A DNA stretch of 64,000 nt, taken from contig OZ059899.1 in assembly GCA_964057225.1 (NCBI GenBank), positions 11,718,001 to 11,782,000 of the forward strand, written 5' to 3'. This DNA is from Auanema rhodensis (Eukaryota; Animalia; Nematoda). The position numbers and the translations under genes were made by a program. Shown here piece after piece: positions 9,301 through 44,030 of this stretch (its first letter is position 1; every line of letters starts with the position of its first letter). The notes under the pieces were generated by a model. It saw only the letters and a program-made list of their open reading frames with translations. It was not told the DNA's origin and did no database searches.

Positions 9301-10143
9301 AAATCGGAAATCTAGAATATCACTAGAACGAATATTGTGATCATTTACGTAGAATAACGAAAAATGTGCTGATGATACTGCGAATTACCAATTATGTTTG
9401 ATCACTGAACATTAAAGTAAAAACATGAGATTAACCAGCTATTGATGATCAGCACTATAAGAAACTTTGGTCTTCTTCGAAAGCAGCCTTTTTTTTTTCA
9501 AATAAATAGGAAAAACAAAAACAGACAGAAACTCAAAGAGCAGCATTAGTCTAGCTGGTTGGAAGTTTGATGTTTGTCTAATGGACAAATACCAGGATAA
9601 ATGCTATGCTGAAGACAATGAATCACCTTATCGATGGTGATTTCACAATTCCCATTTTTTGATAAATTCATGTCACAGGAATATATTATTGATACAGCCG
9701 GGAAAAATTAATGTTGCTCGTTGAAAGAAAGCGTACGATTTCAACAAAAGCACATTTGTCCAGTAATCACACAATATTCATCACAAAGACAACGTTAATA
9801 AACAATAATGCAGAAAATAGTTTACAACAAAAATGAACCCAAGGCATTCTCATGAATTTAGAACATTTATACTCTAGTTTGGTTAAAAAATTGCTTGAAC
9901 GATGAAATCAAGTTTAAACATTAATAATTATCATTTTCATCAATATATATATCATTATTTAAAATTTCAATATCTAATATCCTAATAAAAACCAAAATTC
10001 AAAAAAAAACCGAACAATTCTGTGTAATGTGTTCGAAACTATTCGAAAAACTTCGAAATCCGCAAATTTTACGCATTAATAAGACGAATCGCAATTCAAA
10101 TTTGTCGCGAGCGGTCGCGTCACGGTCGCCCCGCCTCTCCTCA

Positions 10144-10975
10144 TATAAAAGGCCGAGCCTCGATCAGTCAGGCACGCCGTTTTTGGTCGTCTCTGGCATA
10201 TCCCGGCATCTGCCGATTGCCGTGGATATGCCTCACGGGCTTTCTCAAGTATTGGGCGCTTTCTAGTCAAATTTACCCAATCAAGCTCTTCAAAACCAGT
10301 TAAACATGCTCTGTCTACTCAACTGGTGTGCTGTACTGCTGTCTACTTATTCCCGGATAACACAAGATGTCTACTTCAATGTTCCGGATGCCAATAACTT
10401 TTAAATTATCGGCAGTCAACTATTTCTGTATATATTCTATTACTTTACAACCTACTATTCTGTCTATCTACAGAAGATTTCAAGCCATCCAAGCCTACGC
10501 TAGCTTATTCGGATTTTCGGCTGTCAATATTTCTCTACCGCCTTCCGCTGTCTGGTCCACTTCTTACGATGTCTCCACGATCAATGGGATCGATTCCATT
10601 TGCTCAAAACCAGTACTGACGTCTTCTACTGTGGTTGGTTCTCAGGATTTCCGGTCTTTTCTAGTATAATTTTTTTTGTATTTTTTTTGTTAAGTCGTTT
10701 GTATTGTATTTGCTGCGTTTCGAATTGCGATTTGAAAACACTGGAGTTTACCGATCTTTCTTAACTTCCGGCCATACGGTGGGCCAATGGAAGATCCCGA
10801 AAGTAGCGGTGAACTCCAGTGTGTCATTTCCTTTCATGGTTGGTGCAGATGCGTCAGTGCTATCATGGGTGTACCTCACTTCCGGCCATACGGTGGGCCA
10901 ATGGAAGCTTTACTCTTTGCCATGATTGCACTGTGCTTCAAGTCACCGTGGCTTGTCTTAGATAACGGGTAGCTA
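10144..10975 (+). ncRNA. Candidate structured non-coding RNA / pri-miRNA-like locus (alternatively a non-autonomous mobile element)
   Basis: TATAAAAG at 10144 with a GC-rich upstream block and TCAGT at 10164; hairpins at 10195-10232, 10295-10327, 10738-10822 and 10851-10936. A G-U pair in the 10738 stem favours the + strand. No convincing ORF. Confidence 0.4.
10764..10907 (+). repeat. Exact 30-bp direct repeat ACTTCCGGCCATACGGTGGGCCAATGGAAG (10764-10793 and 10878-10907)
   Basis: Directly visible; copies are 114 bp apart, and each forms the tip of a larger hairpin. Confidence 0.97.
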
Positions 10976-13900
10976 GGCTTTAAATTTAGGCAGCGCCTCA
11001 GTCGTTTTTTAGCATCTCAAAAATCCCTGTGCTAAATTTTGCACTTTTTTTGTGAGCGCACGTTTCGTATGAAAAAAATGTATATAAAAATAGAAAAACG
11101 CGTAGAAAAATGTACAAAAAATTATTAAAATTTAAAAAGTCTTTCCGCCGGCGGTAGACGCGCAAAAAGTTCATAAGCAATTTGTTTTTTTAATTGTTCT
11201 TTTTGTTGTATCTCTATTCTGGTCGTTATTTGTATCTGTTATATTTATAATTCGTTTGACCAATCGAGCTAAGACGAGTAAAAATTACAAGTCTATTTGT
11301 TGTTTTTTTTTATTTGGGGATTTATGATGCAATTCTATTTGGAGGGGCAGTTTCAAGCTGTAGAAGTGTGGACACGATCGATAAACTAGATGAATCGATT
11401 TTCGTGTTGAGGAGTGTTCTTTGAGCTAAGGATTACTATTAGGCAAAATGGGGTTTACTTTGTGTCGAGCCTTTCTGTTTCCCCTTCCTTTCAGTGAGAA
11501 ATCATTGTTTAGAGAATGTCTTTTGTAATTACTTTTATTACATAGGAGTCTGAACAAGTTTCTATGTTTTCGTAGAAGTTGGAAAATCCAAACCACATGA
11601 TTGTTTTCGGAAAAATTCGTGAAATGATTGAAACTGTTCGGTATTGATTCGTATGATTCAAGGAAAAGAAATTTTATTGTTAACAGACTCCTACGTAGCA
11701 TAAACGTCGATTTTCGTTGAAAAGAGGACGCGTTGTCGTCGCGTATATAACCCGACCAATCAACGAACCAGCCTTCGTCGTCTCTGATCAAAGAGAGCGT
11801 GAGATTATAGTGTGACAACGGAAAGAACATTAGTATGCTGAGATATCAGAGAAAGAGGCAACTAGACAAACATAGTACATTAATATGTCTCGAGGCTGAA
11901 CTGAATCGAAAAAAAAAGAAGAAAATTTCGGAGCTTCACTACCGGTCTGCGATCCGACGATTTTGAGGATGAAGTAGTAACAGCGATCGATTCTTAGATT
12001 TTTGTTGGGGCGGCATTGTACTTCATTTTATTTGACTGTAAGAAGAATAAGAAATTCATCCTTTATTTCTATTCTCTCGCTTGGTTTCCTTTTAGTCGTG
12101 TTTGTCTTAGTCGCATCGAATTCTATTCATTTCCTCAATAGTCTCGTATGGATGTGGTCGTCGTATTACGTTGTCTGACCAAGGTTTTGAACCAGCATTT
12201 GGACCAATGATCTTAGTTACATATAATTGTCCATAGCAGTGAAATGGAATTAATTTTCATACAGTTTCTCTGAATATATATTTCTCCGAAGGGAAATATA
12301 TTCATATCTTAAGAAGGGGTGAGGCAGAAGAATTTCGTAATGCTTTTAGGGAGATGTTAGTTCTCAATCTTGAAAGTCTTGGAAAAGCTCTTGAAATATA
12401 GAACTTTTTGTGGACTTTCTCACCTAATGAGAAGATATTCGCATAAGGAAAGAGCACAGAGTTCAGCAAGATTTCAAAGTGCAATGTAGTGCGTACGAAC
12501 TCTGCCTCAAATGGATTATCATCTTTGGTTCTTTCTTTTCATGGTTTTGAGGTTGAATTCATTGCACATAAAATACAATTAAGGGCTGGCTATTTCAATA
12601 GAATTTAGTATGACATTCAACACTCAAACAATCAATGAAAGTTGTTCTTATGAATATTGGATTCATCAAGTGACTGGATTAAGATATTATATTAATATAT
12701 TCATGTCGTACATGTGTACGTTTTGATGTTTTCAAACGAAAAACATGAACTGAGAAGACTTTTTCGATTTATGTCTGACACGCATTTACGTGGTCATTTT
12801 GATCTTCGTTTTATTGCGTAACTATTTTTGATTTTGTGATCACAGACACAAATGTCTATTTCCTGCTTAGTATCAACATGTGACAAGTTTAGGAATTATG
12901 TATGTATCTCACGTAATCTATGAATCTTAGTTTTATGATGCTTCAGGCTTCTTTTTTGAATATTCTTTTGTGCAAGTAATGAAGGTAGATTGACGTCTCT
13001 ATTTCAAAAATGGTTTCTTTGAGGATGAGGATAGAAATTAAGAGGACAATAATTCAAATCAGAATGCATGTCTATTAGATTGTTCGCGTTATCTATTAAT
13101 TCCGAGGTCATTAAGTTTTGAATTCAAATACCCTAGTAATTGATATGACTTTCACCTAGATTTTGTCTAATTTAAACTCATTTAAACATCTTTCGTATTG
13201 AAACGAGATAATTGCAGTACTCTAGGATGTCTATAGAAGTAGTATAGATCCAATTTTGTCGGTGGTTCTTAGCATTCTGTAGTAGCTATACAACTTTCAA
13301 ACATGGAAACGTTTTTTGTTCGAACAGCTTTCCTTTATGCTATGCCAGCTATGTTCAACATCCAAAGGTTATCCTTAAAAAGGAAAGCAGTAGTACTAAT
13401 GTCCTTTCGAGCTTTTTGGTCTCACTTAGTTCCTATATTGTGACAAGTGAATTAGCATGTTTGATGGGGGGAATGCTGCTGACTACGCCCTTACAACGTG
13501 GAAAGACAGCGGACTTCGCTAGTTCCAACAGAAAACGTTTGAACGTTTTGGTTGACTGTTTCCTTGAGAAAAAGATTGTAGTTCTGCATTGAATCTTGTG
13601 GAGATTCGAATACGTAAAGAAACTGTATAGATGTTACAAAACGAGATTGAATAGAATGATGATAAAGAACATTGAGGGTAATAGCTTATATGAGTCACTT
13701 CAAGTTGTTGAAGGAGAAACTATGATCATGTTTGATACATGGTGCGAAACGTGATAGTTTTTAATGTGTTTCTGTTGATGATTGAAAGCCAGAATGTATG
13801 ATCTTTGAATAGAGAAGACCTTTTCATTCTTCATGAATCTGTAACAATCGCAAAGAAACAGGAGAAAGCCTTGACACAGTGGTTGTATGCTATGCTCGTC

Positions 13901-17804: not shown

Positions 17805-18652
17805 ACTCTCTCTCTCTCTCTCTCGCTATTTCTCTTTCTCTCTTTATCTATTATATATAGTAAAACTTAACTATTTTTAATTTTCAATTCACATTCATAC
17901 ATATCTATTGTTTATTCAAACAGGAATTTATTAAAAATTATTCTTAAGAGGTTGTTCTATTTGCTTTTTTACATCAATTGTTCATCTTTAAAATATTTAA
18001 GAAAAGCTAATAAAAATAAAAAATTTCATAATAAAATAAATCTTATATAACTATATACATATAGTTAAATATATTTAATATTTAAACATTGTATAAAGAA
18101 TATATTGTTGTTAGTTTTTCATATGTATATCTTATGTAGTATTATTCTTCTATTGTTCTTAGATTCTTTCAAATATATTAGAATCTTTGTTAAGTTTATC
18201 TATTACTAATATGTATTTAAACAAAAAAAAATAAATTTATACATATATATAGTAGTATTATATATAATTTTATTTATAATAAATAAATAAAATATTATAT
18301 AAATTATGTGATTATACTAAATGAAAATAATATTTTTTCTGTTCAAAAAATAAAGAACAGAAAGAATTATTTTCTTTTTTTTATTTTAAAATTTATTTAT
18401 AGGATTATTATTACATATTTTTCATTATATGAAACCGTTATGATATAGTGAGAATTTCCGATTATCTGTGTATTATAGTGATCAAAATACTATTTGTTCA
18501 GCAACGACTGAATTCAACACTAGCTGATTGACTCTGCGTTCTGTTTCGTTTTCAAGGCTAATACATATACATATAGAGAAAGTGAACTTAATAATTCCCT
18601 CTTTATTCATCCTTTTCTCTCTCTCTCTCTGTTTTACTCTCCCTCTCTGTAT

Positions 18653-18752
<100 letters not shown>

Positions 18753-19863
18753 TTCTTTCCTTTACGTACCATTGTAATATTGCTCACAAAGACATTTTTG
18801 TATTTGTATCAAAGACATTTTTTAGTTGAAAAGATGAATCTGAGTATGGAAATTTTGATTGTTTGCCAGACCTTTGTGACTGTGAAAGCTTGTCCTGTTG
18901 TGTCAGATTGAAGGGCTCTTTCTCTCTTTCACAAGGTTTCATCCGTTCTTCCTTTACATTCTCTTCAGATAATTTCTCTTTTCTTTAGAATATGTTGATG
19001 TTGTCTCCAATTCTTCTCCTATTCCAACACCTCTCTCTCTCTCCCCCTTGCCCTCTCTCTCTTTCTCTCTTTTTCTGATCTAGCTCTGCACTTGTCCCTG
19101 GTTCTCTACATCTTTCGCTATGCATACTGCTTTCTCTCTTTCAGAAAAGCATGTGTAATGTTAATCTCTCATGCGGCTATCTCTGCCATTTATTCTGAAT
19201 TTTCTCCATCCATCCATGTTTTTACGATTTTATCCTGCTCATACTTCGTTTTTTCATTTCTCCCACATGTCGTCAAGTTGAAAAAAAAACATTTCGCCTC
19301 CAGTGTTATTGACAATTTTTTCATAATCGTCTCACTTCTTTCACTACTTGCCTTCTTTACATTACATAACTTCGTTATTCTTCATTTTGTCCCTGACGTT
19401 GACCTCAATCATCTGATTTTGCTTTTATTTTTCTGGCTGACCTTGTCGCTTAATAAGCTGCGACATGGTTTTGGGCCATCTGATAGACTTTTCATCCCGT
19501 TCTCATCCAATAAGCATCAAGAGTACTAATTGTTCGATGAGGCACGTCCTGATCGCCAGGAAGAGCTTCTCCTATTCCGACTTCAAGGCAATGCACAGGG
19601 CTATGCAATGTCTGGTGGTCCAGCTTATTGATCGCTTTCAGAAGCTTCAAATAACGTTAGTAGTAGTCATGCTGCTGTTAGTTTCTGATATTTTCCCGCA
19701 TATTTCCTGTCACTCATTAGCCATTCCCAGCTCATATTTGCTGCCAAAAGTGCTTAAAACTTATTATTTATAGTTTTACATAGTTAAATAAACACCTTAT
19801 AATCTTTTTATAATACATATATATATATATTTAAATTTTATTTTGAAGGTGAATGGCTCAGCA

Positions 19864-21996: not shown

Positions 21997-44030
<22,034 letters not shown>

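Follow-up and report, generated by a model that had tools for sequence, protein, structure and literature searches.

By the stem rule for pri-miRNAs the stem measures roughly 35 bp, and a canonical miRNA precursor has at least about 16 paired positions in the duplex of ~22 nt. Genuine miRNA paralogues usually retain the stem sequence and leave the loop free to vary. Other structured RNAs, such as the roX-box stem-loops and the Xist A-repeat, have short conserved protein-binding boxes set in stem-loops. Vertebrate pri-miRNA motifs are, to our knowledge, not used in nematodes. Conserved terminal loops of pri-miRNAs act as landing pads for processing factors (PMC2631628). Complete hairpins can also be made in one step by template switching (PMC10710096, PMC8794818), and templated inserts identical to sequence near the break are a hallmark of polymerase-theta end joining (TMEJ) in the germ line of C. 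elegans (PMC4490562).

The locus described here lies in a window of 64 kb of a nematode genome, the window being the whole stretch of DNA that was analysed. It comprises two hairpins that are real, statistically strong and structurally homologous; the pair is single-copy and falls outside the described families (Table 1). Both hairpins carry the same 30-nt tip, hereafter called the apical module. The locus is most likely a young gene for a microRNA-like or protein-binding RNA.

Table 1 Features of the hairpin locus and of the region upstream of it (positions in the window)
Feature	Position	Strand	Remarks
TATAAAAG TATA box, putative Pol II promoter	10144..10151	+	sequence only
GC-rich 38-nt hairpin, putative 5' leader	10195..10232	+	9+5+2 bp
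Hairpin 1	10738..10822	+	basal helix of 16 bp with one U.G, topped ultimately by the module
Apical module, copy 1	10764..10793	+	5-bp and 4-bp helices, AAU bulge, 8-nt loop
Linker (32 nt) separating the hairpins	10823..10854	+	no ANANNA (H box), read directly
Hairpin 2	10855..10933	+	14-position basal helix, 10x12-nt unpaired internal loop, module
Apical module, copy 2	10878..10907	+	identical to copy 1
First T-run of at least 4 (T6)	11005..11010	+	after 316 nt without one

Structure and stability of the two hairpins

The basal helix of hairpin 1 pairs positions 10738-10753 with 10807-10822, and above it follow a 2x3 internal loop, a 5-bp CUUUC/GAAAG helix, a 4x5 internal loop and the module. 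From base to loop the 5' strand measures 36 nt and the 3' strand 41 nt in the RNAfold structure. The basal helix of hairpin 2 pairs 10855-10868 with 10920-10933, with 13 of the 14 positions paired and one U.U mismatch, and in the predicted fold the internal loop separates this basal stem from the module. A weak basal extension, which contains one G.U pair, reaches out to 10848-10938, and the stem length is 33-40 nt depending on the base chosen, interrupted by the 10x12-nt loop.

Folding of the + strand with RNAfold, a check that the preliminary description of the locus had called for, gave -46.4 kcal/mol for hairpin 1 (z -7.1) and -37.4 kcal/mol for hairpin 2 (z -3.8), and none of 200 shuffles folded as stably as either hairpin. 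Among 5112 windows of 100 nt, taken from both strands of the 64 kb, the most stable fold was that of hairpin 1, and hairpin 2 was among the four most stable loci. When the pair was folded in a context of 320 nt, the centroid structure retained essentially these two hairpins alone. The structure first described for hairpin 1, 16 bp with one G-U and a CTTTC/GAAAG extension, was thus recovered. The statement that both basal stems are fully paired was right for the 16 bp of hairpin 1 and slightly overstated for hairpin 2, because of its U.U mismatch.

The same 5-bp duplex, CACUG:CAGUG, is found at both stem bases, strand-swapped between the hairpins (10738-10744/10816-10822 in hairpin 1 and 10855-10860/10928-10933 in hairpin 2). 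This duplex may serve for recognition at the stem base, or it may be coincidental.

The apical module is an exact 30-nt direct repeat on the + strand with a start-to-start spacing of 114 nt, and exact copies were found at both of the hairpins to which an identical tip had been ascribed. RNAfold predicted a 5-bp and a 4-bp helix, a 3-nt bulge on the 3' side and an 8-nt loop for the module. With up to three mismatches allowed, these two copies were the only matches in the 64-kb window, and two matches were obtained in 0 of 100 shuffles. An octamer, UCACCGUG, is present at 10944-10951, 11 nt 3' of hairpin 2, and is complementary to UACGGUGG in both modules with six Watson-Crick pairs and two wobbles. 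The UACGGUGG string covers the apical loop plus the first G of the upper helix in each module, and the match could reflect loop-tail pairing or chance.

Common register of the stems

Positions 10738-10822 were aligned without gaps with positions 10852-10936. The basal helices of both hairpins fell in the same alignment columns, 4-16 paired with 70-82, with standard pairs in 97.7 % of the cells; this value was 27-43 % when the 3' partners were slid by 1-3 columns. Eight of the 13 basal pairs were changed on both sides, one was changed on one side, one was broken and three were the same. Three identical pairs is the number expected by chance of unrelated helices, and so no residual homology of the stems is indicated. 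The identical columns outside the module (15 of 55) were also at the chance level. The 5' spacers (~10 nt) and the 3' spacers (~13 nt) keep the same length from one hairpin to the other. The stems and spacers of the two hairpins are thus without residual sequence homology, in agreement with the initial statement that the basal stems share no sequence. The associated argument, that simple duplication and decay would not account for the pair, was likewise borne out by the helices lying in the same columns with most of their pairs changed on both sides.

Two histories fit these observations: an old duplication of the whole hairpin, or a recent copying of the tip into a second hairpin. An old duplication would imply selection on the sequence of the tip, on the pairing of the stem and on the geometry, and the best-fitting known mechanism would then be a pri-miRNA-like tandem precursor. 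A recent copy may instead be a neutral by-product of mutation without function, in which one hairpin is original. Either an unrelated local palindrome would have been broken at its tip and polymerase-theta end joining would have inserted 30 nt copied from the module, or template switching during replication would have built inverted arms around the module. Both TMEJ and template switching explain the sharp 30/30 identity and the closeness of the copies, the distance between donor and copy being just 114 nt. The razor-sharp boundaries, the chance-level identity of the flanks and the position of the module of hairpin 2 near the centre (9|12 nt) of an otherwise 21-nt loop are also as expected of such an insert, as are the presence of two copies only and the failure to find targets of the variable parts in the genome (see below). 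The neutral origin nevertheless requires that two strong palindromes arose independently in a span of 120 nt and that the insert landed in the register of hairpin 1, for which the chance was estimated as ~0.03, and it leaves unexplained both the promoter-like block on the same strand and the + strand wobbles of both hairpins. Templated inserts of 30 nt are at the long end of their range. Taken together, a neutral origin is considered rather unlikely.

Copy number, relatives and targets

The genome searched comprised 180.9 Mb in 112 contigs. The 29-nt core of the module had two matches genome-wide with up to three mismatches, both at this locus, which answered the question raised in the preliminary description of where else the 30-mer occurs. 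The 401-nt block containing the locus was single-copy in the genome. When the entire hairpin was used as a covariance model (R1; 85 positions, 22 bp), the search found nothing beyond the two hairpins in 181 Mb, and nothing meaningful beyond them in the 64-kb window with the filters off. Of the arms, the 16-mer from hairpin 1 had no genomic match apart from itself and the arm with which it pairs, and the 14-mer from hairpin 2 had one further match, which is the chance expectation.

A repeat, MITE or transposon remnant was rejected as an explanation, since the 401-nt block, the module and the hairpin model are unique and the arms are not transposon ends. A match to the interior of a known repeat had been named at the outset as evidence that would count against a structured RNA; the block, the module and the hairpin model were all confined to a single locus in the 181 Mb. 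The term modular cassette, which had been used for the pair, was not supported, as a cassette would be expected to belong to a family and the genome contains just these two copies. A dispersed modular RNA family with a constant handle and variable guides is thus not supported, no further copies having been found.

Near-complementary targets were searched for in the whole genome, on both strands and with up to three mismatches, using stretches of 23-27 nt from the 5' arm of hairpin 1 and from both arms and the spacers of hairpin 2. Each stretch matched itself alone. The absence of near-complementary sites does not support a siRNA-, hpRNA- or guide-like role with extended complementarity, and the initial suggestion of guide-like flanks was not borne out; the search does not bear on seed-only targeting. 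Of two scans of metagenomes, one gave no match and the other only two bacterial matches, both without the basal stems and about as many as expected by chance (an estimate), and a search for the sequences in the full texts of papers gave one match, which was irrelevant.

Strand and genomic context

The U.G pair of hairpin 1 and the G.U pair in the extension of hairpin 2 form on the + strand only, and the folds of the + strand were more stable than those of the - strand by 4.4 kcal/mol for hairpin 1 and 2.5 kcal/mol for hairpin 2. The locus would probably be read from the + strand. The TATAAAAG box, which precedes hairpin 1 by ~590 nt and shares its strand, lies in the GC-richest block of the neighbourhood (~10100-10260). 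From the usual -30 spacing, a Pol II start would be placed near 10175. The chance that a TATA box would occur there by composition alone was ~5 %, a figure estimated from base frequencies and not computed with a tool. The 38-nt hairpin just 3' of the box ranks with the most stable local folds anywhere in the 64 kb, and box and hairpin may represent a Pol II promoter and leader.

A 13-mer, TTSGTCGTCTCTG, follows two TATA boxes of the + strand that are 1.6 kb apart (10144-10195 and 11744-11786), and the combination of TATA box and TTSGTCGTCTCTG was found at these two places only, genome-wide. A second paralogous unit at the TATA box at 11744 was considered and set aside, as the spacing from TATA box to 13-mer is 30 nt there versus 39 nt at the first box and the downstream sequences are dissimilar.

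The hairpins lie within a gap of ~20 kb without coding signal. A codon model, crude and trained on the neighbouring LRP-type exons, detected no coding signal in 1-18.8 kb of the window, and within ~8 kb on each side of the hairpins there was no coding signal, Pfam match or protein homologue. The ORFs across or adjoining the hairpins had no Pfam family above threshold, and neither the ORF spanning both modules nor the ORF ending upstream had a homologue in the protein collection. A coding reading of the ORFs at the hairpins was rejected on these grounds. Farther along, the minus strand at 21997-30000 carries a large gene of the LDL-receptor-related (LRP/megalin) type, from ~22 kb on; its exons include LDLa, EGF and YWTD-like ones, and it has an NPxY/NPxF tail. 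At 18482-18911 there is a long microsatellite, (GA)n/(CT)n, which appears as RERERE or SLSLSL in ORF translations.

The ORF ending upstream, an ATG ORF of 100 codons at 10367-10669, stops 68 nt before hairpin 1 and contains a 46-nt GT..AG interval (10428-10473) resembling the short introns of this genome, so the hairpins might be paired cis-regulatory elements of a small coding gene that has escaped recognition, lying in its 3' UTR. This is highly improbable: the ORF is without codon-model signal, Pfam family above threshold or homologue, removal of the 46-nt interval shifts the reading frame, and by chance every 64 kb should contain about a dozen ORFs of 100 codons (composition-based estimate).

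At the DNA level, a perfect match to the CCAAT-box consensus (RRCCAATSR) was read directly from the + strand of the module and a perfect ETS core, CCGGAAGT, from its - strand. With their intergenic position near promoter-like blocks, the module copies could accordingly be paired composite sites for transcription factors that belong to the enhancer or promoter of a gene nearby. The motifs were matched post hoc, with hundreds of known ones to choose from, such sites require no 30/30 identity and no inverted repeats in register around them, the stems are left without an explanation, and the 29-mer was found nowhere else in the genome, all of which makes a DNA-level element very unlikely.

Comparison with known RNA families and classes

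The window had no match in Rfam 15 at the gathering score, in line with the preliminary description, which had recognised no known RNA family in the pair. At E≤10 the matches were noise, the best being plant MIR162 (16 bits, E 1.3). Membership of a canonical miRNA family, or a shared seed, was not found. In the would-be duplex of ~22 nt, 13-16 positions are paired in hairpin 1, the number varying with where Drosha is assumed to cut, and ~11 in hairpin 2 in any register of its RNAfold structure. The 5' arm of hairpin 1 has a likeness to mir-64, and that of hairpin 2 to mir-46/281, and the AUUGCACU string in hairpin 2 resembles mir-235/92; all these likenesses were set aside because of seed mismatches or wrong position and the lack of support from Rfam. 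A screen of titles and abstracts identified no small-RNA study of the genus Auanema in the literature.

An H/ACA RNA was rejected on both strands. Direct reading of the + strand found no ANANNA in the linker and no ACA after hairpin 2, and the - strand has H-like hexamers and no ACA after its second hairpin. The geometry also differs, as the lower stems of 14-16 bp are too long and the loop is ~26 nt from the box site, not 14-16 nt. C/D boxes, looked for by eye on both strands, were absent from the required places, and a telomerase-RNA template was rejected, there being only a single TTAGGC-like unit nearby.

No T-run of four or more occurs in 10689-11004 of the + strand, which is preceded by two T8 runs and followed by the T6 run. 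Gaps of that length rank no higher than about the 95th percentile for the window, and hence a Pol III unit is possible, not indicated. A Pol III gene of the U6 type was rejected, since the upstream spacer of the U6 genes of this genome had no counterpart in 10600-10700 when compared by eye. The U6 snRNA genes themselves form a head-to-tail array with a period of 226 bp (G000:C1:6375156-6386113, loci L005-L016), with at least 48 identical full-length copies scored and ~13,000 first-look candidates genome-wide.

Discussion

The tentatively preferred reading, with a confidence well below even, is that the locus encodes a lineage-specific Pol II non-coding RNA. This RNA would contain a pair of paralogous, pri-miRNA-like stem-loops, and their constant apex would be a conserved terminal-loop handle. 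One + strand Pol II transcript would start downstream of the TATA box at 10144 and bear the two stem-loops of ~85 nt, each with a sequence-free basal helix of 14-16 bp at a fixed distance below the sequence-specific 30-nt tip. An RNase III-type enzyme (Drosha/Pasha) would dock on the basal helix and its junction, small-RNA duplexes would come from the variable stems, and the constant apex would be the handle for a sequence-specific RNA-binding factor that steers the processing of both hairpins together. Among the ideas of the preliminary description, that of a constant handle on a processing hairpin is probably the best reading. A miRNA-like pair whose 3' products share a 5' end had also been suggested. 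This fits the Microprocessor ruler poorly: a 3p product cut from the basal junction would take in no more of the module than its final 4-5 nt, and products measured in this way would come mostly from the variable stems, which makes the shared 5' end the weaker alternative.

The pri-miRNA-like reading is supported by folds far more stable than those of the shuffles and kept in the 320-nt centroid, by basal helices in one register with gap-free spacers despite identity at the chance level, and by the 36-nt 5' strand of hairpin 1, which fits the stem rule of ~35 bp. The 114-nt spacing of the hairpins is typical of nematode miRNA clusters and argues in the same direction, as do the wobbles and more stable folds of the + strand together with the TATAAAAG box on that strand in a GC-rich block, and the lack of coding signal, Pfam match or homologue within ~8 kb on each side. 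Against it are the pairing of only ~13-16 of the ~22 duplex positions in hairpin 1, the lack of a match to any Rfam miRNA model, the reversal of the usual pattern of conserved stem and free loop, and the ~5 % likelihood of the TATA box by composition (an estimate). In addition, the 10x12-nt loop of hairpin 2 lies where the duplex should be, and would make this hairpin a poor substrate for Microprocessor or Dicer.

The same loop keeps a second RNA-level explanation a serious rival, namely a structured lncRNA in which the 30-nt module is a binding site displayed twice, on rigid helices, for one RNA-binding protein and the basal helices merely present it and set the spacing. It draws on the same structural evidence (folds, centroid and register) as the pri-miRNA-like reading and on the gene-free gap with its TATA box and leader hairpin, and it accounts better for an invariant apex on free stems and for a middle region that is paired in hairpin 1 and open in hairpin 2. 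There are, however, only two copies of the module in the genome. We know of no RNA-protein motif that the module matches and of no protein that binds it. A protein-binding lncRNA module of this kind is regarded as fairly unlikely.

It is doubtful, and distinctly improbable, that the locus is a modular RNA gene of a new kind, in which a dedicated protein reads the 30-nt apex and acts at a fixed distance on any double-stranded stem below it. If such an apex-reading system existed, new stems, products and specificities could evolve freely under one constant handle, and processing would be measured from the apex, distinct from the base-measured Microprocessor rule.

If the pair were found to be expressed and conserved, it would offer a clean natural case in which the sequence of the tip is absolutely constrained and the stem is constrained to pair only. 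This would be the opposite of the usual miRNA pattern and would point to a sequence-specific factor in a nematode that reads terminal loops. If one copy were a recent templated insert, the locus would record a natural case of repair by polymerase theta at a palindrome, and would show how look-alike RNA modules can arise without selection.

Among the known systems, H/ACA RNAs (hairpin-hinge-hairpin-tail) also have tandem hairpins, and hairpin 2 shares with them a large internal loop between stems, but the + strand here is without H box and ACA, the lower stems are 14-16 bp long and no Rfam model matched. A single step of template switching or polymerase-theta end joining yields inverted repeats that are locally perfect, or short and exact copies of adjacent sequence, as could have occurred here, but these mechanisms predict neither stems in the same register nor a promoter-like block on the matching strand. 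The roX-box stem-loops and the Xist A-repeat resemble the locus in having a short invariant GC-rich core repeated within helices of free sequence. Here, in contrast, there are two copies only, the core is itself the tip of a hairpin, and the RNA is predicted from DNA.

The closest likeness in arrangement is to clustered pri-miRNAs, such as pri-miR-18a with hnRNP A1 (PMC2631628): intergenic tandem hairpins that lie on one strand at a distance of ~100 nt, a stem of ~35 nt in hairpin 1, and a sequence-constrained apex that may serve as a landing pad. The locus differs from them in lacking a seed or family match and in the 10x12-nt loop that interrupts the would-be duplex of hairpin 2, and in its apex, which is an identical, structured 30-nt stem-loop in both hairpins, on stems that share nothing.
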